64,000 bases of DNA, taken from IMG/VR virus record IMGVR_UViG_3300044644_001125, positions 248,001 through 312,000 of that record; one strand, written 5' to 3'. Position numbers and translations under genes: made by a program. Positions 4,776 to 63,345 of the stretch are shown piece after piece. The notes beneath the pieces are model-generated. The model was given only the letters and a program-made list of their open reading frames with translations, was not told the origin of the DNA and ran no database searches. Positions within the stretch are counted from its first letter, which is position 1. Every line of letters starts with the position of its first letter.

Positions 4776-4880
4776 ATGAGAATTCACGAAATACTAGAAA
4801 ACACAACCAAACAATTTCCAATTCCATGGAACTCGGCATGGAAGCCGAGTGACCCCCTAGGACGGGTTGCGACGCGCTAG
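4776..4880 (+). pseudogene. 5' fragment of a fourth leader-bearing ART-like gene
   Basis: GGAG RBS and ATG 4776 give MRIHEILENTTKQFPI..., stop at 4878-4880; FHGT (ttc cat gga act, 4822-4833) lies in a shifted frame. Confidence 0.55.
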
Positions 4881-6340
4881 CGGAGCAGAGGACGCGAGGG
4901 TCATTTAATTGACATGAGCGGCAACCGTCTTACCTGTTATTATACAGACATAGCTTACAAAGACAACTTCAATTTAACTAAATAGAGATATGAGCACATC
5001 TACTAAAATCACTGGATACAAAACGAAATGCCTGTTAAATCAGGAGCAGATCGCTTTGTTCGATAAATCAGTGGATGGTTGTGTATTTGCATATAACGAA
5101 TTTCTTGCATTGGTGAACGCCGAATATGCCATAACTGGTAAGATTTCTACCAAATGCTGTAGTGTCAAAGAATTAAGAAATAACAACCCGTGGTTAAAAG
5201 AGCTATCTAGTAGAGTAATCGATGGATCTCGTCTTAATCTATTGGATGCATTTAGCCGGTTCTTTAGTAAGCAAAATGACTTCCCAGTATTTAAAAACCG
5301 GTATAGTAAGAAATCACTAAGACATGCCGGCGATTGTTACTTGTACATGAAAAATGGGTATATGTACGCAGTTATTCCAAAAATTGGTCATGTGAAGCTA
5401 TTGACTGATTTCTCGGATTCAGCTAATCAATTTGATTATACAACTGTTACTGGGATAACCTTATCCCAAGATAGTCTTGGAAACTTTTATGTCTCATTTC
5501 ATGCGAAATCGACTACTGCTCATTTACCAAAGACCCATAAATCAGTTGGTATAGACCCAGGTCTTACTACTTTTGCGACCTTGAGCACTGGTAAAAAGAT
5601 CAAGAATCCAAGATTTCGTGAAAGAACAGAAAACCGAATGAAAGCGCTTCAGCGTAAACTCGCGAAATGTACCAAGAACTCAATAAGATATAACAAATAT
5701 AAGAAACAAATAGCTGCACTTCATCAGAAATCGGCAAATCAATTAAATGACTTCCATAAAAAGACATCAACTAAAATAACCAAAGGCTACGACAACATCT
5801 ATATTGAGGAAACTCAGACCAAAAACATGATGTCTCGTGGTAAGAAAAAAACAAAAAGCCCTAGACGCCTAGGGAAATCATTCGCTCAAGCCGGAATCAG
5901 TGCATTCCGTGAAATCTTGATAAGAAAGGCGGAGCTTGTTGGTAAAAAGGTTCATCTTGTACCAGCTCGCAATACAACAAAAACATGCAGTAGTTGTGGT
6001 CACATCCACAACGATTTAACTCTTAAAGATCGGTCATGGACTTGCCCCGTATGCGGTATTGAACATGACCGAGACATAAATGCTGCCCGTAATATATTAC
6101 AAAAAGGGCAAGCTAATCGGTTTACCGGAGGTGGACTTGTTGCACAGGGCAACAATACCGGGTTACCTAATCAAAAAAGGACGCAGCAAAGCGGGTTAAC
6201 TCCCGTTAGCAAAAGTACCAGTTCAGCTACTAGCAGTACCAGTAGCCTACCTGTTATTTAAACGTCTATTCACGGTTTATCCCGTGAACCGAGGACACGA
6301 CGTCCGAAGTTCTCAGGGATGCCGCGAAATACCGACGGTT
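4831..6340 (+). mobile_element. Non-autonomous tnpB-only element (IS200/IS605- or IS607-related); ends approximate
   Basis: GC-rich hairpins on both sides of tnpB (ACTCGGC/GCCGAGT 4831-4850; TTCACGG/CCGTGAA 6269-6288); lies between two fragments of an ART-like gene; no tnpA adjacent. Confidence 0.65.
4990..6261 (+). CDS. tnpB: RNA-guided endonuclease TnpB
   Basis: RuvC-I VGIDPG, RuvC-II IYIEE, zinc finger CSSC..CPVC, RuvC-III DRDINAARNI; N-terminal HTH-like region. Confidence 0.93.
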   Translation: MSTSTKITGYKTKCLLNQEQIALFDKSVDGCVFAYNEFLALVNAEYAITGKISTKCCSVKELRNNNPWLKELSSRVIDGSRLNLLDAFSRFFSKQNDFPVFKNRYSKKSLRHAGDCYLYMKNGYMYAVIPKIGHVKLLTDFSDSANQFDYTTVTGITLSQDSLGNFYVSFHAKSTTAHLPKTHKSVGIDPGLTTFATLSTGKKIKNPRFRERTENRMKALQRKLAKCTKNSIRYNKYKKQIAALHQKSANQLNDFHKKTSTKITKGYDNIYIEETQTKNMMSRGKKKTKSPRRLGKSFAQAGISAFREILIRKAELVGKKVHLVPARNTTKTCSSCGHIHNDLTLKDRSWTCPVCGIEHDRDINAARNILQKGQANRFTGGGLVAQGNNTGLPNQKRTQQSGLTPVSKSTSSATSSTSSLPVI

Positions 6341-6360
6341 TCTGCCACCTATGCTGGTGC
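6120..6360 (+). ncRNA. Putative TnpB omega-RNA (scaffold plus guide running into the flanking gene); boundaries uncertain
   Basis: Low-complexity C-terminal tail of tnpB followed by GC-rich hairpins (6269-6288; GGAC-acgac-GTCC); this is the expected position for TnpB guide RNAs. Confidence 0.45.
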
Positions 6361-6706
6361 CGAACCAAGCGCAACCGGTGAAATTACCCATTTCAAACAA
6401 TGTGGTAATGTGATGCCACTATTAATCAAACCCGGAAAATCAATGGTTGTCGATGCGAAAGGTGCTAACTGGAATGACATTTACATCAAAAAATATCCTA
6501 TCTTGGAAACAACCAACGATTTCGCGGAATATGCCCAATCAAATGGCAAGGATACTTTGTATATCAAAAACGTAAGAGATAATAAGACTTGGCAGAAAGA
6601 TAAACTTCCTAGCACGGTTGTATTTGCATTTCACCCATCTTATATAAGATCAATTAATGCAAAATTCGACCCAGCCAATCACGAAGATGAAGATTTAATG
6701 GCATGA
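6332..6706 (+). pseudogene. 3' fragment of the interrupted ART-like gene
   Basis: PTVSATYA..GNVMPLLIK..DTLYIKNVRD..VFAFHPSYIRSINAKFDP matches the C-terminal half of the ART-like family; no good RBS or start codon. Confidence 0.6.
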
Positions 6707-6769
6707 TATTATCAACTGTGTTATACTACATTCTCAGAATAACAGTCAATTACCACGAGGAGAAATAAG

Positions 6770-7033
6770 ATGAACACGATTGAATTGTTTTTAGCAGACT
6801 TGGAAAAGCTATGCGAGACGCACAATATCCAATTAATGTCCCCACCAAGTATAGCACCATTAGGAAACTCACAACGTAACTATTTGACATACCCGGGTGG
6901 TATAATGTCGGAGATGTTTGTACAACAGCAGCAAGTGGATATTACCATAAATCTACGAGCAATGCTAGAAGGTAATGTCCATCACGAGACAGACAACCGA
7001 CGTATTCACCCAGCTTTGAAGCATGACTATTAA
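6770..7033 (+). CDS. Hypothetical protein
   Basis: GAGGAG RBS; upstream extended -10 TGTTATACT at 6719. Confidence 0.65.
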   Translation: MNTIELFLADLEKLCETHNIQLMSPPSIAPLGNSQRNYLTYPGGIMSEMFVQQQQVDITINLRAMLEGNVHHETDNRRIHPALKHDY

Positions 7034-7118
7034 TCCCTAGTCATAGTACTGGCTTTTTAGTTTTTACTATGTTATACTGCATTCTCAGTTGGTAGTTTCA
7101 AGTATCTAAAAATAACAC

Positions 7119-7147
7119 TTGACAACTACCAACCACTCACCTACAAT
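7119..7147 (+). promoter_or_regulatory. Sigma70-type promoter
   Basis: TTGACA-17-TACAAT. Confidence 0.75.
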
Positions 7148-7176
7148 ACTAATTTTAACCACAACGAGAGAATCAA

Positions 7177-7434: not shown

Positions 7435-7442
7435 TCTAGCAT

Positions 7443-7467
7443 GAGCAGCCTACGGGCTGCTCTTTTT
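7443..7467 (+). terminator. Intrinsic terminator
   Basis: GAGCAGCC-tacg-GGCTGCTC-TTTTT. Confidence 0.85.
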
Positions 7468-7502
7468 GTAATAGTTAATTTTGGGTCTAAATATTAGTTT
7501 AC

Positions 7503-7590
7503 GCTAGCACCTTGCTCGTACCTCACTCGTACATTACTCGTACATTGCTCGTACCTTGCTCGTGCATTGCGAGCACCGATAGGTGCGAGC
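7503..7590 (+). repeat. Six tandem 11-bp units (consensus RCTCGTACMTT) ending in a GCGA-GCACC-GATA-GGTGC-GAGC hairpin
   Basis: Units start at 7503, 7514, 7525, 7536, 7547 and 7558; hairpin at 7569-7590. Confidence 0.85.
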
Positions 7591-7612: not shown

Positions 7613-7855
7613 ATGGCTAAAATAATCGAACAAAGTGACAAACTAGGTAGACCAGTAGTAGCAGGTAACTTCGTGGCATTCGCACATCACAACGACTTAC
7701 GAGTTGGTGTGGTAACCAAGGTATGCCCAAAACTAATCATGATAACAGAAATAGACAGAGAACGTAATAGGCATTATCGTAAGTATCAGTTTGACTTAAT
7801 CGTAATGGAAGAAAATCCACTGGTAACTATGTATTGCCTAAAACACGGCAAATAA
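7613..7855 (+). CDS. Hypothetical protein (possible SH3/KOW-like fold)
   Basis: AGGA RBS; DKLGRPVVAGNFVAF..VGVVTKV. Confidence 0.6.
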   Translation: MAKIIEQSDKLGRPVVAGNFVAFAHHNDLRVGVVTKVCPKLIMITEIDRERNRHYRKYQFDLIVMEENPLVTMYCLKHGK

Positions 7856-7934: not shown

Positions 7935-10106
7935 ATGAGTTATGTAGATGCTTTTTATGAAAAAGATCGCGATATTATCCACGTAGTTGAACGTGATACA
8001 GATGGCATTCGCCATTACCGAGAATTTCCAGCAAACTATGTCTTTTATTACGAAGACCCAAATGGTAACCATCATTCAATGAAAGGTAAACCATTGTCTA
8101 GGGTTAAAAGTAAAACCCACAAAGAACATCATAAGAATATTGCTATATTTGGTCAAACCAAGAAGTTATATGAAAGTGATATCAATGTTACCTATCGTTG
8201 CCTTGAAGACCATTACCTTAACGCAGATGCACCTAAACTCAATGTCGCGTATTTCGATATCGAGACCAGTATGTGTCCTGATCGTGGGTATGCCGCACCA
8301 GACGATCCTTTTATGCCAATTGTTTCTATTGCTGTATATCTTCAGTGGTCTGAAACTATGATTTGTTTGGCAATTCCACCAAAACATATGAGTATAAAAG
8401 AAGCTGAAGAGCAAGTAGCTGAGTTTGAGAACACGTTTATCTTTAAAACAGAAAAGGAATTATTAGATACATTCCTTACTATTATCGAAGATGCTGATGT
8501 ATTAAGTGGTTGGAATTCTGAATCATTCGATATTCCATATACCGTTAATCGAGTTGCTAAGGTTTTAAGCAAAAACGATACTCGTCGATTCTGTTTATGG
8601 GATCAATCTCCTAAGAAACGTGAATTCGAGAAGTTTGGTAAGGTTTCGACTACTTTCGATTTGGTTGGTCGAGTTCATATGGATTACTTGGACATTTATC
8701 GCAAGTATACCCATGAAGAAAAGCCATCTTATCGATTGGATGCTATTGCTGAATATGAATTAGGTGACCATAAAACTCCGTATGATGGTACATTAGAACA
8801 GCTATACAATCAAGACTTTAAGACTTTTATCGAATATAACCGACAAGACGTTGCACTGTTAGATAGAATGGATAAGAAGTTGAAGTTTATGGATTTGGCT
8901 AATACGACTGCTCATGGTTGTACTGTATTGTTACCAACTACGTTAGGTTCCGTTGCAGCTATTGAACAAGCTATTATCAATGAGGCGCATAGTAAAGGGC
9001 AGATTGCACCTAATAGAAAGCCACGTAATGATAATGAAAACACGCAAGCTGCTGGTGCGTATGTTGCTTATCCCAAAAAAGGTCTACATGATTGGGTTGC
9101 TTCATTAGATATCAACTCGCTGTATCCTAGTACGATTCGTGCACTTAACATGAGTCCAGAGACTATCATCGGACAGTTAAGACCAGTGGCAACTGATAAG
9201 TTTATTGCAGATCAAATGGCTACAGGTAAGAAGTTTGCTTCATGCTGGGAAGGTGTATTTTCGACTTTAGAATATGATGATGTTATGTCAAGAGATTCAA
9301 ATCGTATGCTTACTATCGATTGGGAAGAAGGTAGCAGTGATGAACTTAGTGCTGCTCAAACCTACGATTTAATTTTCAAATCTGGTCAATCATGGATGTT
9401 AAGTGCAAATGGTACTATCTTTACTTTTGAAAAAGAGGGAATTGTACCTGGGCTATTGAAAAAGTGGTACGCTGATAGGCAAGGTATGCAAGCGAAAATG
9501 AAAATTGCACGCGATGCCGGACTCGACATCGAAGAACGATACTGGAGTATTAAGGAGCAATTTTGTAAATTATTGCTAAATAGTTTATACGGTGCTTTGC
9601 TCAATAGCGGTTGCAGGTTTTTTGATAAACGTATTGGCCAAAGTACAACGTTGACTGGTAGGTCTATCACTAGACACATGACAGCTCAGGTTAATGAAAT
9701 TGTATGCGGTGAATATAATTATCTAGGAAAATCAATACTTTACAATGACACGGATTCGCTAGAATCTGGATCTATCATTCGAACAACGAGTGGAGATTTG
9801 ACTATCGAAGAATTGTTCGATCGTGGTAATTTGAAATGGAATTCTGGTGATAAAGAATATTCACGCGATGATGATATACGAGTAATACACTGCGATGGGA
9901 CTGACAACTTGTCATATACCAATTATAATTATGTTTATCGACATAAAGTGTCTAAAAGACGATTTAAAATTATGACAGCGAATGGAAAAACGGTAACAGT
10001 AACCGAAGATCATAGTGTTATGATCAAAACGGATACTGGATATATTGAAAAGAAACCGATGGATATTAAACCAGGTGATGTGGTAATGACTATTAATACA
10101 GTATGA
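7935..10106 (+). CDS. DNA polymerase family B (gp43-like), N-terminal part fused to the split intein N-half
   Basis: Exo I FDIET, Exo II GWNSESFD, Exo III YNRQD; motif A DINSLYPS; motif B KLLLNSLYG; motif C YNDTD then intein sequence. Confidence 0.95.
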   Translation: MSYVDAFYEKDRDIIHVVERDTDGIRHYREFPANYVFYYEDPNGNHHSMKGKPLSRVKSKTHKEHHKNIAIFGQTKKLYESDINVTYRCLEDHYLNADAPKLNVAYFDIETSMCPDRGYAAPDDPFMPIVSIAVYLQWSETMICLAIPPKHMSIKEAEEQVAEFENTFIFKTEKELLDTFLTIIEDADVLSGWNSESFDIPYTVNRVAKVLSKNDTRRFCLWDQSPKKREFEKFGKVSTTFDLVGRVHMDYLDIYRKYTHEEKPSYRLDAIAEYELGDHKTPYDGTLEQLYNQDFKTFIEYNRQDVALLDRMDKKLKFMDLANTTAHGCTVLLPTTLGSVAAIEQAIINEAHSKGQIAPNRKPRNDNENTQAAGAYVAYPKKGLHDWVASLDINSLYPSTIRALNMSPETIIGQLRPVATDKFIADQMATGKKFASCWEGVFSTLEYDDVMSRDSNRMLTIDWEEGSSDELSAAQTYDLIFKSGQSWMLSANGTIFTFEKEGIVPGLLKKWYADRQGMQAKMKIARDAGLDIEERYWSIKEQFCKLLLNSLYGALLNSGCRFFDKRIGQSTTLTGRSITRHMTAQVNEIVCGEYNYLGKSILYNDTDSLESGSIIRTTSGDLTIEELFDRGNLKWNSGDKEYSRDDDIRVIHCDGTDNLSYTNYNYVYRHKVSKRRFKIMTANGKTVTVTEDHSVMIKTDTGYIEKKPMDIKPGDVVMTINTV
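9756..10103 (+). other. Split intein N-fragment (116 aa, Ser1)
   Basis: Starts SLESGSIIRT..LTIEELF immediately after YNDTD; block B VTEDHSV; ends KKPMDIKPGDVV then a stop. Confidence 0.9.
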
Positions 10107-10113
10107 GGAGATA

Positions 10114-11844
10114 ATGATGAATGAATTGGAAGAACGTAATTTAACAGTACTAACATTTAAAAAGAAGTACCCACGGCAGTACAAGTACTTGCTTGAATAT
10201 TACGGCGGGGTTCGTGTATTTGACAAAGCAGCGGCGGTGTGTTTATATTTACGAGGGGCTAAACCTCCGACATGCTCTATTTGTGGGAAATTACTTGCGG
10301 TTGATAAATGGTCTAGGAATTCGTCATATTCGCCAAGGTGTAATACTCACTCGAAAACTAACCCTGATACTATAGTAACTCGTGAGATATTAGAGGAAAA
10401 TAACCCACATGGGTATACTATTGTTGACGTGCCACTATATGCGTCACCATCGACCTATATAAAACTACACTGCCATAATCATGGTGATTTTTCACAACCA
10501 GCGTCTAATTTCCTTAAAGGTATGCGGTGTAATAAGTGCTATGATCGTAGTACTGAAATTCCAGTAAAAGTCGATTATAATACTTGGTTGGAGCGTAGTA
10601 TTGGACATTTTGGTGATTTTTATGATTATTCAAAAGTCAGTTTTACAAGAGTGGAACAGGATATGATAACAATAGGATGCCCAGATCATGGAGATTATGA
10701 GCAACGTGCATCGACTCATATGCGCGGCCATGGTTGCCCAAAATGTGCAAACGCATTGAGTAGTACAAATCTAACTCGATCGACTGCAGAATTTATCAGG
10801 TTGGCAAATATCAAGCATTCTGGAAAATACCAATACCCGAATACAATATATAATGGTTCTCGTTCTATTGTGGAAATTGAATGCCCGATACACGGGCCAT
10901 TTAATCAAGTCGCGTATTACCATCTTGCTGGGAATGCGTGTCAGCAGTGTGGTTATGAGATATCAACAAGCAGGTCCGCTGCAGAAAAAGAATTGGTTGC
11001 GTGGTTGGAAGATACGGGTATTTCTAACGTAACCCACTCTAATAGGATTTTCAGTTACGAGTTAGACGTTTATCTACCAGATTATAACATTGCAATCGAA
11101 TATAATGGATTGCATTGGCATTCTTCCAATAGTAAAGATTTAGATTGGAAATATAAATCTGCACACTTGTACAAGACCACTGAGTGTGAAAGTCGAGGTA
11201 TTCAACTATTTCATATCAACGAATCAGAATGGGGATTGAATGCAACGAAAAAGGAAATATGGAAATCGATTATACTTGAAAACCTACAGGTCGCACCAAC
11301 GATATTAAAGATTACTGACTGCGATATCATAATTGTGGATTCTAGCACCGCAATCGAGTTCATGGAAGAGAATCATATTTATGGTTACTTTCCTGGATCA
11401 TCGCATATTGGTTTAGAACGTGATGGTGTACTGGTTGCATTAGCCACCTTTGCCAAATCTAATGATAGAAATGCGAAACCAAATACGTATGAACTGGTAA
11501 GGTATGCCACCCTAATATACACAAGCATACCATCCGCGTTTAGTGTAATACTTTCGCATTTCACACAGGATAAGACTGGTGCATTAATTGCATATGCTGA
11601 TCGTAGATTCGATAACGGTGCTTTATTTGAATCCAATGGGTTCGTGTTAGATTCAATTGAAAAACCAACATATCAATATATCAAAGGTCAAAAAACGTAC
11701 CATCGTTGCAAATTCACCAAATCAATTGCGGAAAATACATTACCAATATTTGACAAAAGCAAAACTTTGGTTGAAAATATGTATGATAACAAATACCGCA
11801 GAATGTGGGATTGTGGCCAATTGATTTATATTTTACAATTTTAG
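10114..11844 (+). CDS. Free-standing homing endonuclease-like protein (zinc-ribbon repeats, Vsr/DUF559-like PD-(D/E)XK domain, C-terminal GNAT-like domain)
   Basis: Own GAGGAG RBS; three CxxHG...CxxC repeats; ELDVYLPDYNIAIEYNGLHWHS..GIQLFHINESEW; C-terminal YELVRYA..AYADRRF..WDCG. Confidence 0.85.
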   Translation: MMNELEERNLTVLTFKKKYPRQYKYLLEYYGGVRVFDKAAAVCLYLRGAKPPTCSICGKLLAVDKWSRNSSYSPRCNTHSKTNPDTIVTREILEENNPHGYTIVDVPLYASPSTYIKLHCHNHGDFSQPASNFLKGMRCNKCYDRSTEIPVKVDYNTWLERSIGHFGDFYDYSKVSFTRVEQDMITIGCPDHGDYEQRASTHMRGHGCPKCANALSSTNLTRSTAEFIRLANIKHSGKYQYPNTIYNGSRSIVEIECPIHGPFNQVAYYHLAGNACQQCGYEISTSRSAAEKELVAWLEDTGISNVTHSNRIFSYELDVYLPDYNIAIEYNGLHWHSSNSKDLDWKYKSAHLYKTTECESRGIQLFHINESEWGLNATKKEIWKSIILENLQVAPTILKITDCDIIIVDSSTAIEFMEENHIYGYFPGSSHIGLERDGVLVALATFAKSNDRNAKPNTYELVRYATLIYTSIPSAFSVILSHFTQDKTGALIAYADRRFDNGALFESNGFVLDSIEKPTYQYIKGQKTYHRCKFTKSIAENTLPIFDKSKTLVENMYDNKYRRMWDCGQLIYILQF

Positions 11845-11850
11845 GAGTTT

Positions 11851-11988
11851 ATGATGCAATTTGTTTCAGAATTATCAACGGTGACATTCGTTGAGGAGTT
11901 ATCACCGTTTGATGACGAATACGTATACGACATTGGAGTTAACGCAACAGATCCATGGTTTTTTGGTAACGATATACTAGTTCATAAT
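11851..11988 (+). other. Split intein C-fragment (46 aa), terminal His-Asn, +1 Ser
   Basis: Block F VYDIGV and block G ILVHN followed by S. Confidence 0.92.
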
Positions 11989-12837
11989 TCAGTATATTTC
12001 TCTGCGTATGAAACACTTAAACCAGATATCGAAGCTGGTTTGATTCCATGGGATAAAGAATCAATCATTCAGTTTTATGATGCAATTGGTGAAGAAGTTA
12101 ACGAGACTTTCCCTAAATTCATGTCCACTGCGTTTCATTGCCCTAAAGCACGTGGTTCTGTTATTAAGGCTGGTCGTGAGATTATTGGGTCTAAAGCGCT
12201 ATTCATTACTAAGAAACGGTACGCGGTTCTTTACTTCGACAAGGAAGGTAAACGTACAGATATTGATGGTAAGCCTGGAAAAGTAAAAGCTATGGGTTTG
12301 GACTTAAGACGATCCGACACCCCACCTCCCATTCAAGACTTTTTAAGTAATGTATTGGATATGGTTCTTAATGGCAAACCACAAGAGGATACAATCAAGT
12401 ACATTACCGAATTCAGACAAGAATTCAAGAAATGGAATGGTTGGGAAAAAGGTTCACCAAAACGAGCTAATAACATTACCAAGTATGGTACACTATTAAC
12501 CGATAAAGGCAAAGCAACGATACCAGGTCAAGTCAGAGCTAGTATCAATTGGAATACTTTAAAACGCATGAATAGTGACAAATATACTATGTCTATTATC
12601 GATGGATCAAAAGTGGTAGTTTGTACACTCAAAGATAACCCGATGGGATTCAAGAGCGTAGCGTACCCAGTTGATGAACAAAGATTACCTCAATGGTTCA
12701 AAGAACTCCCATTTGATGAAGCCATTATGGAAGAAAAGTTAATTGATGATAAGTTGGACAACTTGATTGGCGTACTCAACTGGGATTTGAGTGAAACCCG
12801 TCAGAATAACTTCTTTAATTCGTTGTTTTCGTTTTAA
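11851..12837 (+). CDS. Split intein C-half fused to the DNA polymerase B C-terminal part (palm/thumb)
   Basis: AGGAG RBS; YVYDIGV..FFGNDILVHN|SVYF; KKRYA; KAMGLDLRRSDTP. Confidence 0.95.
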   Translation: MMQFVSELSTVTFVEELSPFDDEYVYDIGVNATDPWFFGNDILVHNSVYFSAYETLKPDIEAGLIPWDKESIIQFYDAIGEEVNETFPKFMSTAFHCPKARGSVIKAGREIIGSKALFITKKRYAVLYFDKEGKRTDIDGKPGKVKAMGLDLRRSDTPPPIQDFLSNVLDMVLNGKPQEDTIKYITEFRQEFKKWNGWEKGSPKRANNITKYGTLLTDKGKATIPGQVRASINWNTLKRMNSDKYTMSIIDGSKVVVCTLKDNPMGFKSVAYPVDEQRLPQWFKELPFDEAIMEEKLIDDKLDNLIGVLNWDLSETRQNNFFNSLFSF

Positions 12838-12840
12838 GTA

Positions 12841-12870
12841 TTGACATATTGCGGTTAGTTGTAATATACT
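12841..12870 (+). promoter_or_regulatory. Sigma70-type promoter overlapped by an inverted repeat
   Basis: TTGACA-18-TATACT; ATTGCGGTTAGT/ACTGACCGCAAT arms span the spacer and the -10 box. Confidence 0.65.
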
Positions 12871-12888
12871 GACCGCAATTTAAACAAA

Positions 12889-12910
12889 GCTCGTGCCTAT
12901 CGGCACTCGC
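12889..12910 (-). repeat. GCGA-GTGCC-GATA-GGCAC-GAGC hairpin (copy of the 7569 element on the opposite strand)
   Basis: Reverse complement of gctcgtgcctatcggcactcgc; compensatory stem changes relative to 7569-7590. Confidence 0.8.
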
Positions 12911-12933: not shown

Positions 12934-13257
12934 ATGCTGAAACGTGAGGATGTAAAACTTACCATTGAGATGGCACCAAAGCAATACGAAAAAGAATTAG
13001 CATGGGATACTGGTATGATGTACTGTTTTTCATTAGATATTAATGGAAAAACTGGTTGGAGATTACCTACTATATCAGATGTACGAGATTTATGGTTCCA
13101 ATATGATGCTTCCGAAATAGATGGAATCTACTGGACAAATCAAACCACACCAGGTGAAGATTTCGCATGGGCTGTTGATTCTGACGGTATAGATGCTACT
13201 GGATATGATAAGTGTATGGCTAAACTCATGGTTAGACCAGTACGAGATATCACTTGA
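12934..13257 (+). CDS. Short DUF1566/Lcl-like (CLec-fold) protein, paralog of the 60588-61473 genes
   Basis: EMAPK..YCFSLDINGKTGWRLPT..YWT..AW..VRPVRD. Confidence 0.75.
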   Translation: MLKREDVKLTIEMAPKQYEKELAWDTGMMYCFSLDINGKTGWRLPTISDVRDLWFQYDASEIDGIYWTNQTTPGEDFAWAVDSDGIDATGYDKCMAKLMVRPVRDIT

Positions 13258-41200: not shown

Positions 41201-44200
41201 GAAATGACTTGGTCGGTATTCTGTGGAGTAATAGTCAAATATGGATCTTTACTAGAAGCCAGAGCTTCGTAATAATTAAAGAATTGATTATTTGAGTTAT
41301 ATCCACTAATTACCCAACCAGTATCTGATTTAGTTATCATCACACCACTATACGTTATAGTACGAATGGGTGAACTAACATTGAATATAATGTCATAGTT
41401 TTCAGGTGGAACAAATACTGTACTACCGAGTGTACTTGTTTTACTATCAAGTATATACTTTTGTTGGTCTGTTACTACGAAACCAGATAGTCGGGTAGAT
41501 AACTTCACATCTAAGTTCTTGATTTTTTTCTCAACCAATACTGGGTCGGTACCTTTGGATTTAGCATGGTCAACCAAATAGGTAATCAAACCAGTGGATT
41601 GCACTGTGTTAGTTGGGATAACCAAGTCTGATAAGGTAACAAATACACCACTTGTAGTGTGTACTGTTTGTCCAACCAAATTGGTTTTTGTTCTTGACGA
41701 ATCAAATCTATCTGAAATATATTCAAATGGTTTCATCAAACACATAGCAATACTAACCGTAAACGCCCAGTCTGAACTAGAACGCCAAGCATATTCTACC
41801 GGTGATACATCACCAAATACAAAACTACCTTGTGTTGCATATATGTCATAATTATGAGCTAATCTTGACATCAATGGACTTAGCAATGCACCATGTTCAT
41901 CAACTGGTAAATGATCTAATAAGGTACTACGCTTATATCTAGCATATTCACCTGCTCTTTCACCTTGACGGATAATACCGTCACGTAAATCTTCCCATAG
42001 AATCAAGTTATTGCTTGTATATGGTGCTGGACCATATTCGGATTCCCACCACAACGGCTGTTGTGAAAAACCAAGCATCTCCCATGGGCATCTATGTGGT
42101 CGATCTGTGTCATAAAACCAATTATAAATTCCACGCCAGTACCCAGGCAATCCCTGCGTACTAGTAGGATCTGTCATATTACTATAATTATAAGTGAACG
42201 TATTCGATGAATCATACCAATCATTATTAGTATAAGTCATCTGATATTGTGTAGACCACTTATAGAATTCGGTTTTAATTACAGAATCTATCTCGTCTTT
42301 TGAATACAAGCCAGTGTCGTAATAACCACCCATGATTGAATCCAAATCAAATATATCTGAATTATATTCTTGTTTGATATTGTTATAGATTCTTAATTCC
42401 AATTCTAATAACAAATCATCACGATAGTCTTCATACGCTGCAGTTATACTACCATCATGCCCCTGAATAACCATCCGAGGTGTGACATAAGTATCATCCA
42501 AGAATTTCATTGGTGTGAATTTCTTAAATAATCCCATTGATGTTGGTGTTGCTGGTATATAGTTAACTGACGTTGACAAGTATTCACGAATTTCGACAAT
42601 ATCACCTTCGAATAATTCAGTTAACAATGTAACATAACCGAATACATCATTAAACATGTAGTCGGTTGTATTCAGCAAGTGTGTTGGCTTTAACAACCCA
42701 TCGGCTACTCGATACACGTATACATAAACCGCTGAAGTACTTATTTCTGTCAAATTGATTTTTTTCGACAATGCAAATGTTTTAATTCCAGTATCTTCAA
42801 CTGTATATCTTATTGGCGTATAAGCACCACTACCGAGCATGTCAGAATTTGCAAATGGGCTTTCTGCTGTTTTGGTAGATGTCATCAACGTTATCAATTC
42901 ATCAACTGCATCAACGTTATTCATACCAGCATATTGCGATGCCTGTTCAATGAAGTTATTCTTAAATTCAGTATACATCTTTTTAGCATACTGTATGGAT
43001 TTTATAACGTTGTGAGTTTTATCACATAATACAGTAACTGCCAATGGTGCAAGCCCAGCATGTTTCAAAAATCTCGATGCATACTGTTGGTAATTAGTCA
43101 AGTCACGAAGATTAGACACACCTGGAGTTATCCCAGAAAAATCCGAAAAGAACTCAACTGCTGATGATATATGGTCATCCGCTTGTCCAAGCGTAAATGT
43201 CGTCATTTCTTGATTTAACGGGTTCTTTTCCAACCCAACTGGCATTTGATAATACCCAGTATTTGGATCGATATTAGCAATTATCTTAATAGATACGATA
43301 TCATTAACCGCTAAGTTTTTTGGAAACGTAAACTGATCACCTTCTCTGAAATACGTTCCAGTATAAGGTTTTCCATTTATGTACAATCTAACAATTAGGT
43401 CTGATAACGGTATGTTTGAAAAATCAATGGTAGTAAAGGTTACTACTGTCGTAGCCTCTGTGATTTTTTGACTATCGATGATAGGTTGGATGTACTTGTT
43501 ATCAGTTTTAATCCAGCCATTATCGAATTCTAAGCCAATATTAGTTAGTTTGTAATACCCGGATTCTATCTTTTTTGTTGTAGTTACTTTGTTTATCGCA
43601 TAAGTAAACGTGTCAATACCAAAGTTCCAATTGAACTGGATATCTCCAATGTTACCGATGTTTAGGTAACTTAAACTGAATCCAAGCTGAGTATCTGTTC
43701 TACCATTACCAACTTTATAACTAAGAATTTTAGAACCAGCAAATGTACTACCTGGATAATATTCAGTATTTGAAAAACTAATTTCATTATCGTCGTATAC
43801 ATCAAATAAAGGTGCTTGGTTAACTGCAGTTTTTTGTTGACTTAATACCCATTTAACACCATCAAAATGGAACATTTCACCACCAAAGTTTTTACCATGT
43901 TTGATAAGAACGCATTGGTCAATGTATGGTAATGAATCATCCACCTCTATCAAATGAATTTGTGGAACTATAGTTGTGGTGGTATCAGTTATTGATTGCG
44001 TATTATGGTTGAAGTTCATTAACTGAACTTCGTAAATCTTATTATTGACTAAGTTATCAGTATCTGCGGTTACTAATATTCTAGCACCGTGAAATAAGGT
44101 TTCATTATCAATTTGGTACCCAGAACTACCTTCAATTGTAGAAAAAACATCAGTGGTTAGGGTATCAACAAAATCAACTGGTCTTTTTGCAATCGCACCA

Positions 44201-45807
44201 TAATTGAATAGTCTTAAATTTGACGAGAACTCGATGATAGGACGTTTTGCTCTATTAGTTTCTGGTGCAGAGTATTCTTGCCCACGAATAGCACATGAGT
44301 ACTCAAGAACAGAACGATGGAACCATCGATTGTATCGACTCCATGAATTAGAATCAATACTAGAATGTGATATCGTAATATAATCTTGGTCAGTTGGATA
44401 AGCACTAGCCTCATCAAATGGCTGTGTGTCGAATCCTTCGTTGTCAAAAAGAACATCAGGAACATCTTTAGAAATTCTAGGTGTTACCAAATCGGCAAAT
44501 GGCATCAATGTTATAGACGAACCAACACCACTAACCAACCAAGTACCACTAGCATATGTCGATGGAGTTACTGAACCCCTGAATTCAACAACTAAACCAT
44601 TGGTGAATACAATACCATTGCTACTTGTGTAGTTTTTTAATCCAACGATTTCAGCATTAACATCAATTTCAGTATTAATCTTAATATCGGCAATGATGAA
44701 TCTACCCAATTTATTTGGATCTAATGGGCTTTGATAATATAAGGAATCAGGTGCATCATAAGGAACTTGGAATGTAACAGTTGCATTACTTGTACCATTA
44801 TTCATCACACCTGTGTTATATTCCAACGAAGGTGCTTTAACAACATACCCAATGAATCTCCATTCAGCCGAACCAGTCACAGGTAGGGATATTACATCGC
44901 TTGGTATGTTAGCAATTGCTTCCCATAATCCATTTGAATATACAACAGTCGAACCAATCTTATATTCAGTTCCGGTGATATATTCATTAAATGCAGTTTG
45001 ATATATGAATCTAACGAATTCCCAATCAGTAATTAAATTAGGAACTGTTCTGGTTGCACTTGCAACAATTCGAGTTTTTGCACGAATTAACTGGTTTTCA
45101 TAAACCGCAAGTTGACCTTGGGTATATGCAAGTACTGGATTGTAAGAAATTGAACCGGTATCATACTGCGTTCTAATGATAAAACTATCATTAGGTGTAT
45201 TAACATTAAACTTGTAAGTTTGACCACGATATAGGGTCAATGTTGGATTGTTAACTACATTAGCTACATTCGTGACTTGTGTGAACACAAAAGAATTAGC
45301 AGCAACTGTTACATTGTACTCACTAATTACCTTTGCACTATGCCCAATTACTGGAACTGAAAGAGGACCATCTGGTTCCCAGAAGTATTCACGATAATTG
45401 ATAAATTTATCCCAACTAATTGGTGGATTCCACGAATAATGTTGTTGTGATGTGATATGGTCATCTCTATCATTAGTATTACCAAAGAATTTAAGTTGGT
45501 TCTTTAAATCAATGTAATCATAAAAGTTTTCGATTTTATCGCCATCTGTAAACACCACACCAGGTTCTAACTGATATCTACTACGAAGCGTGTTATCAGA
45601 ATCCAGATAGGTATCAGAACCACTGTATGTTTTTCCGTATCTTCGACCGACATAACCAACTGTCTTTTGTAAAAGACCAGGTTGAATTAATGGATCGACA
45701 GCGGCCGCCATGAATTTGTTGTTTGTTTCCGTTTTAAAAACGCCTGGCAATAAGTCAACAGTTTTTCTTATTGGTAATTGGCTTTCTGGGTAAAATTGTT
45801 CAGTCAT
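32218..45807 (-). CDS. Giant baseplate wedge/structural protein (4529 aa; gp7-like position)
   Basis: Uninterrupted ORF downstream of the gp6-like gene; CBM-like W..Y..G.IV.Y repeats, FG-GAP-like propeller repeats, VKPYRS motif, repeated VYVNG Ig-like units. Confidence 0.7.
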   Translation of the reverse strand: MTEQFYPESQLPIRKTVDLLPGVFKTETNNKFMAAAVDPLIQPGLLQKTVGYVGRRYGKTYSGSDTYLDSDNTLRSRYQLEPGVVFTDGDKIENFYDYIDLKNQLKFFGNTNDRDDHITSQQHYSWNPPISWDKFINYREYFWEPDGPLSVPVIGHSAKVISEYNVTVAANSFVFTQVTNVANVVNNPTLTLYRGQTYKFNVNTPNDSFIIRTQYDTGSISYNPVLAYTQGQLAVYENQLIRAKTRIVASATRTVPNLITDWEFVRFIYQTAFNEYITGTEYKIGSTVVYSNGLWEAIANIPSDVISLPVTGSAEWRFIGYVVKAPSLEYNTGVMNNGTSNATVTFQVPYDAPDSLYYQSPLDPNKLGRFIIADIKINTEIDVNAEIVGLKNYTSSNGIVFTNGLVVEFRGSVTPSTYASGTWLVSGVGSSITLMPFADLVTPRISKDVPDVLFDNEGFDTQPFDEASAYPTDQDYITISHSSIDSNSWSRYNRWFHRSVLEYSCAIRGQEYSAPETNRAKRPIIEFSSNLRLFNYGAIAKRPVDFVDTLTTDVFSTIEGSSGYQIDNETLFHGARILVTADTDNLVNNKIYEVQLMNFNHNTQSITDTTTTIVPQIHLIEVDDSLPYIDQCVLIKHGKNFGGEMFHFDGVKWVLSQQKTAVNQAPLFDVYDDNEISFSNTEYYPGSTFAGSKILSYKVGNGRTDTQLGFSLSYLNIGNIGDIQFNWNFGIDTFTYAINKVTTTKKIESGYYKLTNIGLEFDNGWIKTDNKYIQPIIDSQKITEATTVVTFTTIDFSNIPLSDLIVRLYINGKPYTGTYFREGDQFTFPKNLAVNDIVSIKIIANIDPNTGYYQMPVGLEKNPLNQEMTTFTLGQADDHISSAVEFFSDFSGITPGVSNLRDLTNYQQYASRFLKHAGLAPLAVTVLCDKTHNVIKSIQYAKKMYTEFKNNFIEQASQYAGMNNVDAVDELITLMTSTKTAESPFANSDMLGSGAYTPIRYTVEDTGIKTFALSKKINLTEISTSAVYVYVYRVADGLLKPTHLLNTTDYMFNDVFGYVTLLTELFEGDIVEIREYLSTSVNYIPATPTSMGLFKKFTPMKFLDDTYVTPRMVIQGHDGSITAAYEDYRDDLLLELELRIYNNIKQEYNSDIFDLDSIMGGYYDTGLYSKDEIDSVIKTEFYKWSTQYQMTYTNNDWYDSSNTFTYNYSNMTDPTSTQGLPGYWRGIYNWFYDTDRPHRCPWEMLGFSQQPLWWESEYGPAPYTSNNLILWEDLRDGIIRQGERAGEYARYKRSTLLDHLPVDEHGALLSPLMSRLAHNYDIYATQGSFVFGDVSPVEYAWRSSSDWAFTVSIAMCLMKPFEYISDRFDSSRTKTNLVGQTVHTTSGVFVTLSDLVIPTNTVQSTGLITYLVDHAKSKGTDPVLVEKKIKNLDVKLSTRLSGFVVTDQQKYILDSKTSTLGSTVFVPPENYDIIFNVSSPIRTITYSGVMITKSDTGWVISGYNSNNQFFNYYEALASSKDPYLTITPQNTDQVISVGGVSAAYTDWEPNVTYANGQIVRYEQHFYRALKTNSSTTFNDEHDYWKLLSNLPITGEVVAKNRKSFNKFTIKQMLYGTTLESIQEVVDFLLGYEVYLKSIGFVFSGYDAENRVPINWTTSCKEFMFWTKHNWAAGSLISLSPISSRIEINMNGGVVDSLTDGFYDYEILKSNGQVFPIEQLNVTRTFQNIVITPDSTTDGIYYLNMYCVLKEHVTVFSDRTVFNDVIYDKTTGYRQGRIKSQGFRTVDWDGDYTSPGFLFDNVNIVVWQQYKDYKLGDIVAYRSTNWTCIKSHTSTESFDNAVWSKLDTNPTKELVSNFDYKINQFDEYYDTTAEGIGESQRTLARHAIGYQPRGYLQDLAEDPVTQFQLYQGFIREKGTINAVTKVFDKLSRSGDSSIVLNEEWAFRVGQFGGVDAIEEFEFYIEKNKIKLNPQPLLVTDTSVSDGIAYQIKSSDFTLTPSNTVGINKLSYETEPSRTAGYVNTKHVSYMVKTIDDILNLDIRAIKDNANIWVTFDDYSWNVFRFNDTALRVVNITETSTIDFELSSRHTYEVGDVFAVRPLGTITAFSGIFKVVGVTWNTVSIDSSLLSTIPTLNQNKPIYACTFKKARYKSYSDIDDLYAATLPVGAKLWVDANDSDKWEVSQKKDQYSVVSPTVYGDNPIGVGTTTVYAKTLNQVITSIPGSNRIEVYSVGTTGLDWYQSVEPISGIRTGSSSLDGSFGKSMAISPDNKFLIVGSPSASHIRSNYRGAYTNTAIYPIGAIVKTSNALLESIVEIIGDSINDTTADKTKWKEASNIISDSTGTPSNITNQGVISVYEYYDNNWRYSTSFVSPDLENTVQFGTAVALGKTSDTDYLLAVSAAVHPGDSTLTNNHGIVYTYRYTNSEWVFGDATYTLPENSTDMDEFGKSLVMTSDGSTLVVGNPVGENQPKGSVYIYASNDSSVVKLDDMVGDATGDKFGHAIAINPTGSTLVITSPNADSSIIDQGKAYVYTKVNSQYVLSQTIESFEYITNEQFGSSVAISDNRIVISAKNTDYVTYDSFNATFDGGRTTFYSERGYAGAVYVFEKKGDQYLLTSELKPTLRPYESFGGSLACTDSSIFVGSPTYTLPTSDTLVGCLRMFTNTNSNGAWDIIASQQQVVDTRNVKSISLYDNVNSLKIQDVDYVDNSKLKVLNIAEQEITFKTMYDPAVYSIGTNDETQIIEPSQAWADKNVGTLWWDISKSKWMYAEQDDLTYRTGHWNVQVTGSTVDVYEWVKTTILPSEWASLADTTEGLASGISGQPLYSDDSVMVVKELYNSVTGVVTGTQYYYWVKNTALIPDAVIGRNLSALDVANAIDNPIGTGIAFVGLCSPAAMLAYNFGSVLTTETALVNIEYFKDSYNQVPVHNEYQLLSEGSESFELSNELEAKWIDSVIGRDVVGNRVPDNTLPTKLKYGVSFRPRQSMFIDRLPALKMVITNVNSILTTEPFTGNMNFSNLNLVDQAPIVELNYYDTTVDTYQDLQNVGITRVTQAELGVELTNGKVTAVNIVKQGYGYKPNVPVYESISIPAYNYQGVGYQGPLVTVSGDGTGAVVQLIIDKNGSAIQANIISSGKKYSNATATVRPYSVLVNSDSTISGYWSIYAWDSVSKQFVRSSAQAYDTTKYWSYVDWWATGYNSSSKVTNEITAIVSIKTINPVIGDLIRIKEFESGGWATFECIAVPVDAGIFSDFYTMVGRENGTIQLSTKLYDDVTSGVGYDSSAAFDSISYDMDSSLELRNILRAVKHDICIGNNATEWGNLFFTCVRAVFAEQLYVDWAFKTSFLTAVHNVGPFEQPLNYKNDSLQSFQSYIEEVKPYRSTIREYISKYDTTEESSIAIGDFDLPVAYTGGSNKPVTIYDWYTLNQYPWKWWTDNNTFTVKQIILASGGENYNQPPSVVITGTGVGATAKAYISNGVVSNIIIENAGIGYKEAPTVELIGGNTPGSKSASAIAVIGDSKVRLFNVAMKFDRISKTGLYQSLYNTETFIATGYTSVFNLMYAPLNEKNRITVYINDKLILSSEYTVELVIPAGNANIATSGMIIFNNNPIVGDVIVVNYEKHDSLLDSVNRISKYYQPMSGMKGNQLSQLITGVDFGGVQVQGTTFDVTGGWDSQPWFTDNWDSVEQSSDYYYVCDGIANPVIATTVTLPFVPVAGQHINIYVKRESWKSVKQYGLKSTAYTLYDGSMPSVIRLDDIAYTSQWDSTSTINPYAQMPTFIGDGVSATIDIGSYFDTIQGDTLIFRPEESDGSLVINDPNIVDTNMSGGSLERLNNAYTTATGLKAEEIIIEGGKFISPENVSATEENVPGQVLDSLSIKVFDTKSTGSTPLHSTVFISDGITTTYSIGLPIIEFSSVIVTVNKVKKSIDTHYTINLTNNTVKFVLPVTAGAIIEITAIGVGGVAILDSKSFVADGKSAKFATNAKFKDTTSVYVTVNGISTDASFGSTTGKKITGKTEVTVNPMPTVSDDVKVVCFGANANVDFDTSIARINEQTFIYTDNPEFTLSMFAVEPTNHQYTPMIVNVNGSALTGVDTTYGVYTGSTAQFKIELGSGYATPSNIKVYVNGVLKSFLVDYVFNEEMTLVTIDSLVINDVVLIENNSNAEYSINGNTLIISSELTTNDVVNVVWFTQYQTMQLLTDEHVGGKASYALAMKPIDSSYVWVYVNGVKLTPIRDYYLSDDKTKVYLLDTTSESDMVKVVLFGSKLCSTKSYEISKDMLNVFRYNRYSIGTIQLAKDLNYYDTEILVTDASLLSIPVAARNQPGTVLINGERIEYLMLTDNTLSQLRRGSMGTAIAELYTAGTDVADVSIQERIPYNETEMKESFMIDGSTRSVGPLSYIPVKSVRTNWAAGNIPTGYGPCDQVEVFVGGRRLRKNPMHVFNESLGSTSPRADELLDAEFSVDGTSNYIRLTDSVLDSIPVNASVNVVVYRKVGKVWYEQTATAASAGITLLENNTPMAKFISQKTTAMIG

Positions 45808-60526: not shown

Positions 60527-60554
60527 TTGACATTCCAAAATAAGCCTGTATACT
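60527..60554 (+). promoter_or_regulatory. Sigma70-type promoter for the DUF1566-like triplet
   Basis: TTGACA-16-TATACT. Confidence 0.7.
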
Positions 60555-60587
60555 ACGCACAACTTAAACAAAATTAGAGAAACTATC

Positions 60588-61473: not shown

Positions 61474-61548
61474 TCGTTGCGAGCCACAAACCAGTAAAAT
61501 CCCACCAGATAAATAGGTTCACTACCAACCAAAACAAGTGAACCTACA

Positions 61549-62070
61549 ATGACCAGCAAATCAAAAAACAAAGGCAATACATGGGAACGTGAGATTGCAA
61601 ATCACTTATCCTCCATTTACAATCTAAAATTTTTAAGATGCCAAGGTAGCGGAGCATTCGTCGGAGGTAAAAACACACAGCGAAAAGCAGTATTAGATGC
61701 TGGTCAAATCCAAAGTTTCAAAGGTGATATTATCCCACCAACCGAATGGACTTCCTTTAACAGTGAAGCCAAGAACTATGCAGATTTTCCTTTTCATCAG
61801 TTATATTCAGGTGAAGTCAAACAACTTGAAACTTGGCTAGGTCAATTGGTTCAAGTGGCAGATCCAAATGATATGAATATCCTCATGTTTAAGATCACAC
61901 GTAAAGGAAAGTACGTTGCGGTTGAATCTGACAAAGGATGGGACATATCACATCCTCATACCAATTACACTTCAGTTAAGTTTGGCAACTGGCAAATCTT
62001 TGATTATGATTCTTTTTGGCAACATAATCATCAATTAGTCAAGCAATTAAGCACTATTTCGCCAGACTAA
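61549..62070 (+). CDS. Holliday junction resolvase-like PD-(D/E)XK nuclease (Hjc type)
   Basis: SKNKGNTWERE..SGA..GDI..EAKNY. Confidence 0.75.
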   Translation: MTSKSKNKGNTWEREIANHLSSIYNLKFLRCQGSGAFVGGKNTQRKAVLDAGQIQSFKGDIIPPTEWTSFNSEAKNYADFPFHQLYSGEVKQLETWLGQLVQVADPNDMNILMFKITRKGKYVAVESDKGWDISHPHTNYTSVKFGNWQIFDYDSFWQHNHQLVKQLSTISPD

Positions 62071-62103
62071 ATATCATTTTATTATTTCTCAAAAACTAAT
62101 ACT

Positions 62104-62523
62104 ATGAAAGATAAGGTAATCGTATATACTGATGGTGGGTGCATTCCTAATCCCGGAAAGGGTGGTTGGGGTGCTGTACTTATGTGCAACAACAAAGAAA
62201 AAGAACTCTTTGGTGGTGTAGATGGTACTACTAATAACCGCATGGAACTAATGGCAGCAATCCAAGCATTAAATGCCTTAACCAGACCATGTGATGTCAC
62301 AATCTATAGTGATTCAAAATATGTTGTAGATGGAATCACTAAATGGTATCCCAATTGGATTAAGAACGGTCGTACCAATTTCGTTAATCCAGACTTATGG
62401 CATGCACTGGCTGCAGCAGCTAAACCTCACAATGTCACTTGGCAATGGATCAAAGGCCATTCAGGAATTCCTGGCAATGAACGTGCCGATGAACTGGCTA
62501 TGCGAGCTATTGAGTATTGTTAA
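62104..62523 (+). CDS. rnhA: Ribonuclease HI
   Basis: [46 protein letters not shown]. Confidence 0.95.
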
Positions 62524-62611
62524 CTGTTTGTTGACTATTATTTTCTTAATAGTTAACAATAAGTGCTGTTTTTCTCTACTAAATAGAGTATAATCAATCT
62601 ATATCAGAACA

Positions 62612-62801
62612 TTACCGAGACCATCTCAAATATATTTTCACAAAAGTGTTGACAACAGGGATTAACTAAGTTACAATTAATCATACTAAAGAATTACCCA
62701 AAAGCAGTTTACCGAGACCATCTCAAATCCATACCGACACCAAGTCTATATTTTCTTTTACTTACAGAGACCATCTCAAATCATTACCGACACCAAGTCT
62801 A
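62612..62801 (+). repeat. Direct repeats: TTACCGAGACCATCTCAAAT x3 and TACCGACACCAAGTCTA x2
   Basis: Copies at 62612, 62709 and 62762; the last two are 40-nt composites. Confidence 0.9.
62649..62677 (+). promoter_or_regulatory. Sigma70-type promoter with no ORF downstream
   Basis: TTGACA-17-TACAAT. Confidence 0.75.
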
Positions 62802-62849
62802 CTCGCACAAAAGCAATTACTCAATTATCTTTTAGGCACCCGCCAAACT

Positions 62850-63345
62850 TGCTCACCGAATTACTAGATAGAACATAGAAAGGTGAGAGAATTGCTAAGA
62901 AAGCCGCGCACAGGCGACCATTACGTGCCCTTAAACCCTGGTCTACTTGAATCACAGGGGATGGAAGTTCCGACATTAGCAACGGAGATATAGTTCACTA
63001 CCCCACCAGATGAGTTATGGGATATGCCTTCATACAACCCATTTGAACTATAGCAAAAACGAATAACCAAGGCTAAAGATGGGTTGAGAAAACCCACGTT
63101 TACTAGATAAGGTAGCTGTTGTCTAGTAAGCCACCGTCAGATTAATAAGACTGAGCTCGAGGTACCGGCTGACCGCCTCTGTAATGCTCTACATGCTACT
63201 GTGATGCGATGCTTGTACGCAGAACCCTTGGACGTTTCAGTTCCACAATTAGAAATGTCCATTGTCCTTTGAATTAACCCGAGTTTTTCGGGTTAAGATG
63301 TTCAGCTCCACAACCCGCAGTGAGGGCTCCGCTGGCGCGTCGCTT
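62850..63345 (+). ncRNA. Putative large structured non-coding RNA; family not identified
   Basis: GC-richer ORF-free tract with many helices: 62852/62882, 62989/63044, 63080/63091, 63100/63120, 63153-63189 nested, 63230/63252, 63274/63288; upstream promoter. Confidence 0.7.

Follow-up and report, generated by a model that had tools for sequence, protein, structure and literature searches.

What does a short hairpin with a fixed, non-canonical clamp and an exchangeable stem do in the spacers of a large phage genome, and what might read it? This question is raised by 64,000 nucleotides (the window in the following), which represent bases 248,001-312,000 of the IMG/VR virus record IMGVR_UViG_3300044644_001125, a single record of 327,256 bp with a GC content of 38%. 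An original prediction, made from the window alone, had described four hairpins of the pattern GCGA-stem-GNNA-stem-GAGC as one strand-specific family. All four are present exactly as they had been written, with the same coordinates and strands, and the loose pattern has 4 matches in the window, compared to 0.19 expected from shuffles. However, they do not represent a single family. The hairpins at 7569 (+) and 12889 (-) belong to a family of 22-nt hairpins, while those at 4869 (+) and 63326 (-) form a separate 18-nt pair. Our preferred, albeit tentative, reading is that the former are two of about 50 members of a lineage-specific family of repeated extragenic hairpins, a counterpart of the repetitive extragenic palindromes (REP) of bacteria and of the promoter early stem-loops (PeSL) of T4-type phages, which would act mainly in transcripts and also as a recombination linker. 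Positions refer to the window unless genome positions are stated.

A hairpin family with a free stem and a fixed clamp

A genome-wide search led to the consensus T-GCGAG-N4-GNTA-N4'-CGAGC-C for the 22-nt family, usually with T-N before and C-W-W-T after the hairpin. When the search was anchored on the two constant pentamers only, 48 copies were retrieved from the genome, compared to 0-1 copies in each of 20 shuffled genomes, and about 50 copies were found when one mismatch was allowed. The further copies that had been expected from a pattern search of the genome thus exist for the 22-nt type. Addition of the relatives of the phage increased the number of distinct instances to 183. The five inner pairs are all Watson-Crick pairs in 163 of them, and they are built from 12 different stems. 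For the analysis of covariation, 34 non-identical sequences of the phage and its relatives were picked by their flanks alone (the rows L182:3682 and L211:2166 were omitted as non-family or aberrant). The fraction of paired cells was 97.9%, versus 74.6% in shuffles, both sides change in five of the seven pairs, and the covariation score of 0.572 (versus 0.119) was reached by none of 500 shuffles; slid controls collapse. A chance origin of the 22-nt family is excluded.

The G.A/A.G positions (in all 183 instances), the outer G-C and C-G pairs, and the T of the loop are invariant. Position 2 of the loop is free, the G5:C18 pair co-varies once, to A:T, and in some copies a second tandem G.A (GAGC/GCGA) substitutes for two stem pairs. 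The proposal that the stems covary around a fixed clamp is thus borne out by the 34 sequences, whereas the loop is fixed as GNTA, and not as GNNA in general. In the resulting structural model the unit consists, on one strand, of a 5-bp helix of free sequence, a tetraloop with a pairable G and A, and a clamp of two tandem G.A and two G-C pairs. The 22-nt hairpin is under constraint: in 15 orthologous hairpin pairs none of 330 positions differs, compared to 69 of 1800 (3.8%) in the 60-nt flanks.

It is known that G.A-closed loops and tandem G.A pairs stabilize short DNA hairpins. In nearest-neighbour folding, the motif strand was predicted to be more stable than its complement for 49 of 50 copies, as had been claimed for the G.A/A.G strand. 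The mean free energies of the two strands are -12.7 versus -10.4 kcal/mol with RNA parameters and -6.1 versus -5.5 kcal/mol with DNA parameters. The single mismatches that are tolerated in the 183 instances comprise six T.G and five G.A, while A.C or C.A does not occur. Taken together, the mismatches, which are benign on the motif strand, the folding energies and the second tandem G.A lead to the model that the structure is read on the G.A/A.G strand, the one named by the original prediction, as RNA or as DNA. A bias of the motif for one strand had also been expected. With respect to the genome no bias exists (28 copies on the plus strand versus 22 on the minus strand), but there is a moderate bias toward the mRNA-sense orientation, which is described below.

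Genomic positions, orientation and turnover

The carrier is a Rak2-like jumbo myovirus of freshwater. Identities of 33-36% were found between its baseplate wedge protein and those of Atu_ph07, SCTP-2, RaK2 and related jumbo myoviruses, and the sequencing runs that contain the phage are lake-water metagenomes. The record runs round its ends, according to an overlap with a contig of a relative, and relatives were seen as sparse contigs in two metatranscriptome runs.

Nearly all copies of the 22-nt hairpin (49 of 50) lie between genes, although intergenic DNA makes up only 11% of the genome (p about 1e-45). Clusters are found at 80-160, 220-240 and 320-327 kb of the genome, in early or hyperplastic blocks, where the median gene has 81-113 aa and sigma70-like promoters are dense, and the structural block at 268-304 kb is devoid of copies. 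Typically, the hairpin is placed between a stop codon or a terminator and the next promoter or Shine-Dalgarno site. Spacers between co-directional genes contain 26 sense and 10 antisense copies (p=0.011), and in spacers of up to 90 nt all seven copies are sense. Divergent spacers harbor 12 copies (in 7 of 29 spacers), but convergent spacers only a single one (in 1 of 19). The distance to the downstream gene is often short: for 17 copies a plausible start codon follows after 14-38 nt, and the Shine-Dalgarno site typically after 4-10 nt. About 15 copies precede a predicted -35 box by 8-34 nt, eight sense and eight antisense, while other copies precede a Shine-Dalgarno site only. The relatives contain a repeated module of a terminator, an antisense hairpin, 11 nt, TTGACA-N17-TATAAT and a gene. 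A fixed promoter within the upstream flank was considered and rejected, because the flank is AT-rich, but lacks a conserved -10 box at a fixed distance.

The hairpins occur singly, as inverted doublets, or as tandem arrays of 2-5 units with periods of 34-78 nt, and most of them are single or in direct arrays. Inverted doublets are few (genome positions 147,109/147,155, 245,257/245,329, and 106,849 with a degenerate partner; in relatives at 23.5 kb). One array sits between two copies of the same promoter, an array starts 16 nt after a sigma70-like promoter, and arrays of the relatives have periods of 34 and 45 nt. It had been suggested that two hairpins bracket the polymerase locus. However, they are two ordinary members in ordinary spacers, their positions are conserved in relatives, and the family averages one copy per 6.5 kb of the genome.

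Comparison of orthologous sites in relatives revealed several types of turnover. Whole stems have been replaced by those of other family members (AGCC for CACC or TGCC), position 2 of the loop changes, and one case of presence versus absence of the 22 nt, one flipped copy, and a tandem duplication with an inverted inner stem-loop (loop TATC, the reverse complement of GATA) were found. Furthermore, a cassette between two direct hairpin copies was lost between relatives. The stem swaps and cassette changes indicate that the hairpin copies also recombine. Synteny breaks are located within 25 nt of a hairpin in 10 of 147 cases, compared to 3.5 expected; as this enrichment is only threefold, the idea that hairpins are the main module boundaries was rejected. 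Target-site duplications were not seen at hairpin indels between relatives. A contig joint of 7589 with 12889 in run X5 (20-nt side, depth 3.4) was taken to be a repeat artefact or to stem from another locus with a convergent doublet.

The family has a narrow distribution. A 17-base degenerate pattern matched only about 14 contigs in IMG/VR, all of which are 70-98% relatives of the phage. In the metagenome collection, the matching contigs with less than 45% GC were lake relatives and one unrelated contig with 44% GC (L210), and six stretches of higher GC content (51-72%) matched once each, five of them with mismatched stems. In L210 (4990-5250) four units with a period of about 78 nt are arranged in tandem just 3' of a tRNA gene, and each of them ends with GCGAG-CGGC-GTTA-GCCG-CGAGC-C. 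The hairpin sequences and the motif had no match in cultured phages and were not found in the searchable literature, and Rfam 15 has no family that matches the hairpins in the window. Among the matches listed from a scan of genome contigs for the motif, high-GC genomes predominated. A host-derived REP was also considered, but 401 genomes of the family of one Burkholderia genome gave single matches at the level of the control, and thus such an element was not found in those searched.

Possible functions and precedents

The bias to the sense strand, the copies in tight intercistronic spacers, the low number in convergent spacers, and the array behind a promoter, all of which rest on predicted genes and promoters, suggest that a role in RNA, in leaders and intercistronic spacers, is most likely the main function. 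The hairpin would be a structured punctuation mark, mainly in transcripts. A stable hairpin in a leader or between cistrons could shield neighbouring cistrons from nucleases and insulate them from one another, and the constant arms might offer short homologies to the phage recombination system, which would result in copy conversion and in the shuffling of gene cassettes. As the clamp and the loop T are invariant, a specific reader, either a protein or a nuclease, is implied.

The PeSLs of T4-type phages are the closest phage precedent for the 22-nt family. They are lineage-specific stem-loops beside early promoters, which mediate cassette shuffling (Arbiol et al., 2010, PMC2839356; Comeau et al., 2014, PMC4122927). 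In both cases repeated, lineage-specific stem-loops populate the intergenic spacers in those regions of a large myovirus that are hyperplastic and rich in small genes, are often found just 5' of a sigma70-like promoter (here a predicted one), and are tied to indels or cassette differences between close relatives. However, the PeSL stem-loops are described as effective terminators with simple G-run/C-run stems in a fixed order with the promoter (PMC2839356, PMC4122927), whereas the present hairpins lack a U-tract, carry a non-canonical G.A clamp and a GNTA loop that is fixed, and occur in either orientation. In addition, only about 15 of the 50 copies adjoin a predicted promoter, and the carrier is a Rak2-like and not a T4-type phage.

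The second precedent are the bacterial REP and the bacterial interspersed mosaic elements (BIME), which are also short extragenic palindromes with tens to hundreds of copies, occur as singles, inverted doublets (of which the phage has few) and arrays, are located between genes or just past stop codons, and have variable stems and conserved ends. The term "REP-like" of the original prediction is therefore a fair description of the distribution (48-50 copies, 49 of 50 intergenic). In contrast to REP, the 5' foot of the hairpin has no GTAG, the upstream flank being T-N, the unit comprises 22 nt instead of about 35 nt, it contains conserved tandem G.A mismatches instead of bulges, and the carrier is a virus without a match to the Y1 or REP-associated tyrosine transposases (RAYT).

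Repeated intergenic hairpins are thus already known from bacteria and from T4-type phages. The present family differs from these by the invariant non-canonical clamp around a free, co-varying stem, the demonstrable selection, and the predicted strand-asymmetric stability, and these three differences make it well suited to address the question of what reads such elements. It supplies short, well-defined oligonucleotides for biophysics and for pull-downs. If a specific reader should indeed exist, it would represent a regulatory or recombination layer in Rak2-like jumbo phages, the gene regulation of which is barely known.

Several points weigh against an RNA role as the main function. About one quarter of the copies are antisense to their genes, and several copies lie past a terminator and 5' of the next -35 box and are maybe never transcribed, so that a purely RNA-level role cannot cover every copy. 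The sense bias falls to 21:10 (p=0.07) without the five copies that are linked to the DUF1566/Lcl_C paralogous family. A T-run (U-tract) 3' of the hairpin is not present in either orientation across the genome copies, which argues against a canonical intrinsic terminator and sets the hairpin apart from the PeSL stem-loops. If it served stability alone, neither the G.A clamp nor the loop T would need to be invariant. Lastly, the gene calls and promoters are our own crude predictions, and the promoters are consensus matches only.

A rather unlikely alternative is that the hairpin is a dedicated operator, namely, an RNA site that is bound by a single trans-acting protein of the phage or the host (a translational repressor, an antiterminator or an endoribonuclease) and that would define a regulon of early genes. 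The tandem arrays of 3-5 hairpins in long spacers would then be decoys or sponges, like CsrB for CsrA. An invariant clamp, closing pair and loop T together with a free stem have the signature of structure-plus-base recognition, and the many copies 4-10 nt before a Shine-Dalgarno site, the array that follows a promoter after 16 nt, the 34- and 45-nt periods in relatives, and the sense bias are all in agreement with an operator. However, no homologue of RegA, RegB or L7Ae was matched in the phage (the same is true for sigma-70 region 2), no candidate partner turned up, and the antisense copies and those upstream of promoters are left unexplained.

The latter two groups leave room for a role at the level of DNA, which overall is unlikely. 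Single-stranded DNA or an extruded cruciform would be read by an HUH/RAYT enzyme, a primosome, an N4-type polymerase, a topoisomerase/gyrase, or a cassette recombinase. The orientation is not strict, equal numbers of sense and antisense copies (eight each) precede -35 boxes, some of them behind terminators, and the inverted inner stem-loop of the duplicated copy as well as the flipped hairpin in relatives point to DNA events. G.A loops and tandem pairs are also known to stabilize hairpins of DNA, and extruded hairpins are used as early promoters by phage N4. On the other hand, the predicted advantage of the motif strand is small with DNA parameters (0.6 kcal/mol), the indels lack target-site duplications, and the bias tracks the direction of the genes and not the genome strand. 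The original prediction had favored a signal for HUH enzymes or the primosome and had suggested a search for a Y1 transposase. The respective family of HUH/Y1 transposases including RAYT, PF01797, had no match at E<=1 in the 327-kb phage genome, while control genomes matched, and nothing points to a primosome.

The N4-like variant was treated separately. The early promoters of N4 comprise three hairpins at one genome end, which are read by a giant virion RNA polymerase. They resemble the present hairpins in being short strand-specific DNA hairpins of a double-stranded DNA phage with purine-purine loop pairs, but here about 50 copies exist in both orientations. T7-like RNA polymerases (PF00940) had no match in the phage, but they had none in the control genomes either, and thus this null result does not show absence. 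The beta subunit of multi-subunit RNA polymerases (PF00562) had no match in the phage, while 14 of 14 controls were positive. A giant open reading frame (ORF) of 4,529 aa (32218-45807, minus strand), which is located beside baseplate genes, contains FG-GAP and CBM_5_12 repeats only and presumably encodes a giant fibre or adhesin. These two Pfam searches (with the said limit for PF00940) and the fibre-like nature of the giant ORF argue against an N4-like hairpin promoter, and also against a DNA-level signal in general.

A similarly unlikely view combines both levels. In this case the clamped hairpin would be a structure-specific site for a factor that binds a folded single strand, either extruded DNA or nascent RNA, and that organizes early transcription units or moves cassettes, following the principle of attC sites or N4 promoters. 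Nocardioides would have acquired this module either by independent recruitment or by transfer. Nocardioides chromosomes (loci L029, L035, L046, L059, L135 and L140) contain TGCGAG-N4-GNNA-N4'-CGAGCC with co-varying stems in 24-83 copies per genome, compared to 0-1 for a reversed control pattern. To our knowledge, this repeat has not been described, and no Rfam 15 family matches at these loci. It has the same core as the phage hairpin and the same GAGC/GCGA variant, with a second tandem G.A in place of two stem pairs. In contrast to the phage hairpin, it is found in genomes with 72% GC, position 3 of the loop is not fixed, and it sits in a longer palindrome, GGTGGTTGAGGT-GCGAG-N4-GNNA-N4'-CGAGC-CTCGAAACCACC, with two tandem G.A motifs. 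PF01797 had no match in five Nocardioides genomes that carry the repeat. Nocardioides is unrelated to the likely host type of the phage, and the similarity might be due either to homology or to convergence. In any case, it suggests that the design can be reused across very different genomes.

It is equally doubtful that the hairpin is a selfish or neutral repeat without function, i.e., a short palindrome that was spread and homogenized by the phage recombination system through gene conversion and is tolerated between genes. The confinement to one lineage, the exchange of stems for sequences of other members, and the fact that part of the copy number stems from co-duplication with a paralogous gene family would be expected for such a repeat. 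However, self-correction of a palindrome or conversion alone should erase the G.A/A.G mismatches, which are invariant in 183 instances, and neither the lack of changes in 330 orthologous positions nor the near absence from convergent spacers would be explained. That four short palindromes resemble each other by chance is hardly credible: for the 22-nt family this is refuted by the shuffles and the covariation, and even for the 18-nt copies, the sequence of which also occurs inside coding sequence of unrelated GC-rich viral contigs, the shared clamp, loop and closing pair and the insertion of each copy at a non-coding site argue against it.

The 18-nt pair and neighbouring features of the window

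Coordinates of the hairpins and of one predicted promoter in the window
Feature	Position	Strand	Remarks
18-nt variant GCGA-CGC-GCTA-GCG-GAGC	4869..4886	+	in a 33-38-nt insertion upstream of tnpB (4990-6261)
22-nt member GCGAG-CACC-GATA-GGTG-CGAGC	7569..7590	+	sense, 22 nt 5' of the ATG of ORF 7613-7855; AGGA between hairpin and start
sigma70-like promoter TTGACA-N18-TATACT	12841..12870	+	consensus match only; -10 bracketed by inverted repeat ATTGCGGT/ACCGCAAT
22-nt member GCGAG-TGCC-GATA-GGCA-CGAGC	12889..12910	-	antisense to the flanking + genes
18-nt variant GCGA-CGC-GCCA-GCG-GAGC	63326..63343	-	insertion of about 15 nt at the variable 3' end of a four-copy non-coding element

The two 18-nt hairpins (GCGA-CGC-GCYA-GCG-GAGC) are identical at 17 of 18 positions. 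Their stem has only 3 bp, and the conserved G5:C18 pair is missing, but they share the clamp, the closing pair and the loop design with the 22-nt family. In the genome and in relatives the 18-nt hairpin was found at these two loci only. The original prediction had linked the left end of tnpB and the 3' end of the large RNA by this pair. The near identity is correct, but the two copies do not belong to the shared family, and each is an insertion without a counterpart in the paralogues. The insertion around 4869 is missing from the paralogous tnpB copy at 182.4 kb of the genome and is kept in place in L160 and L169; its hairpin is located 22 nt upstream of TTGACA at 4909-4914. The insertion at 63326 is missing from the other three copies of the non-coding element and is kept in place in L161, L164 and L166. 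A spreading family of the 18-mer was rejected, because it has only two loci, and most matches elsewhere are inside coding sequence of GC-rich contigs; nine of the 12 unrelated matches shown, from GC-rich viral contigs, fall within codons of an HNH-type gene. As the same 18-mer recurs in unrelated coding sequence, a match of the 18-mer alone is weak. Removal of one GC step per arm from a 22-mer with the stem CCGC would yield the 18-mer, but its descent from the 22-nt family is a conjecture, and the design of the two copies is at most remotely derived from that of the family.

The genome contains four genes for TnpB (OrfB_IS605 / Cas12f-like TNB), at 4990-6261 of the window and at 182.5, 172.5 and 136.6 kb of the genome, while TnpA was not found. 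The flanks of the copies at 252.9 and 182.5 kb are about 84-93% identical. The position of one 18-nt copy upstream of tnpB is reminiscent of the ends of IS200/IS605 elements. However, in contrast to such ends, the hairpin is missing from the paralogous tnpB element, TnpA is lacking among the genes found, and members of the 22-nt family are not associated with the four tnpB genes.

The non-coding element at 62821-63460 has a length of 560-640 nt, and its four copies (310.8, 232.6, 165.2 and 35.2 kb of the genome) are 79-83% identical. Each copy is bounded by the motif CTAAAAGATAAT in opposite orientations and contains a strong match to the Polynucleobacter-1 RNA (80 bits; in the window at 62903-63053, plus strand). 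The element may thus represent a large structured phage RNA.

The hairpin at 7569 is kept in place in the relative L150, with an exchange of A for C at the free loop position and of the last C for A. It is abutted on the 5' side by 11-nt tandem repeats (CTCGTACMTTR, 7520-7568), of which L150 has about three units fewer. The hairpin at 12889 is located 51 nt past the stop codon of the ORF for the C-terminal part of the family-B DNA polymerase and 23 nt before the ATG at 12934, and it is identical in L150 and L154. The predicted promoter at 12841 would transcribe the antisense form of this hairpin in the leader of gene 12934. The polymerase itself (7935-12837) is encoded in separate N-terminal and C-terminal parts, the former with an intein-like end, and an ORF for an HNH/homing endonuclease of 576 aa (10114-11844) lies in between. 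In relatives that lack 2,263 bp (9757-12021) the polymerase gene is uninterrupted (joint in run X2; locus L154).

Bracketing of the -10 box by a short co-varying inverted repeat is found not only at 12841-12880, but also for many early sigma70-like promoters (e.g., 85-92 kb of the genome), examples being ATTGCGGT...ACCGCAAT and GGGTAC...GTACCC. Another recurrent motif is the 11-mer CTAAAAGATAA, which is usually followed by T and has about 270 sites in the genome at <=1 mismatch, 172 of them intergenic. Sites in the window are at 4716, 56015, 56925(+)/56957(-), 60453, 60505, 62825(-), 63406, 63587 and on. The motif often forms inverted pairs that flank a TTGACA -35 box and is frequently found 10-25 nt upstream of hairpins; it resembles an operator at which an abundant DNA-binding protein of the phage regulates early promoters. 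Outside the window, GGATAAATAAG, which is similar to the core of T4 late promoters TATAAATA, precedes two larger genes at 124,09x and 131,62x of the genome, in both cases downstream of hairpin arrays in divergent spacers.

The gene at 12934-13257 belongs to a group of paralogues of about 100-130 aa that are similar to the C-terminal part of Lcl (DUF1566-like) and have the N-terminus M(K/N)FEIAPK. The similarity to Lcl rests on one Pfam match, of ORF 12934, just below the gathering score. Further paralogues are located at 224.7, 238.0, 238.4, 324.2, 324.9 and 325.9 kb of the genome, and most copies are preceded by a hairpin.

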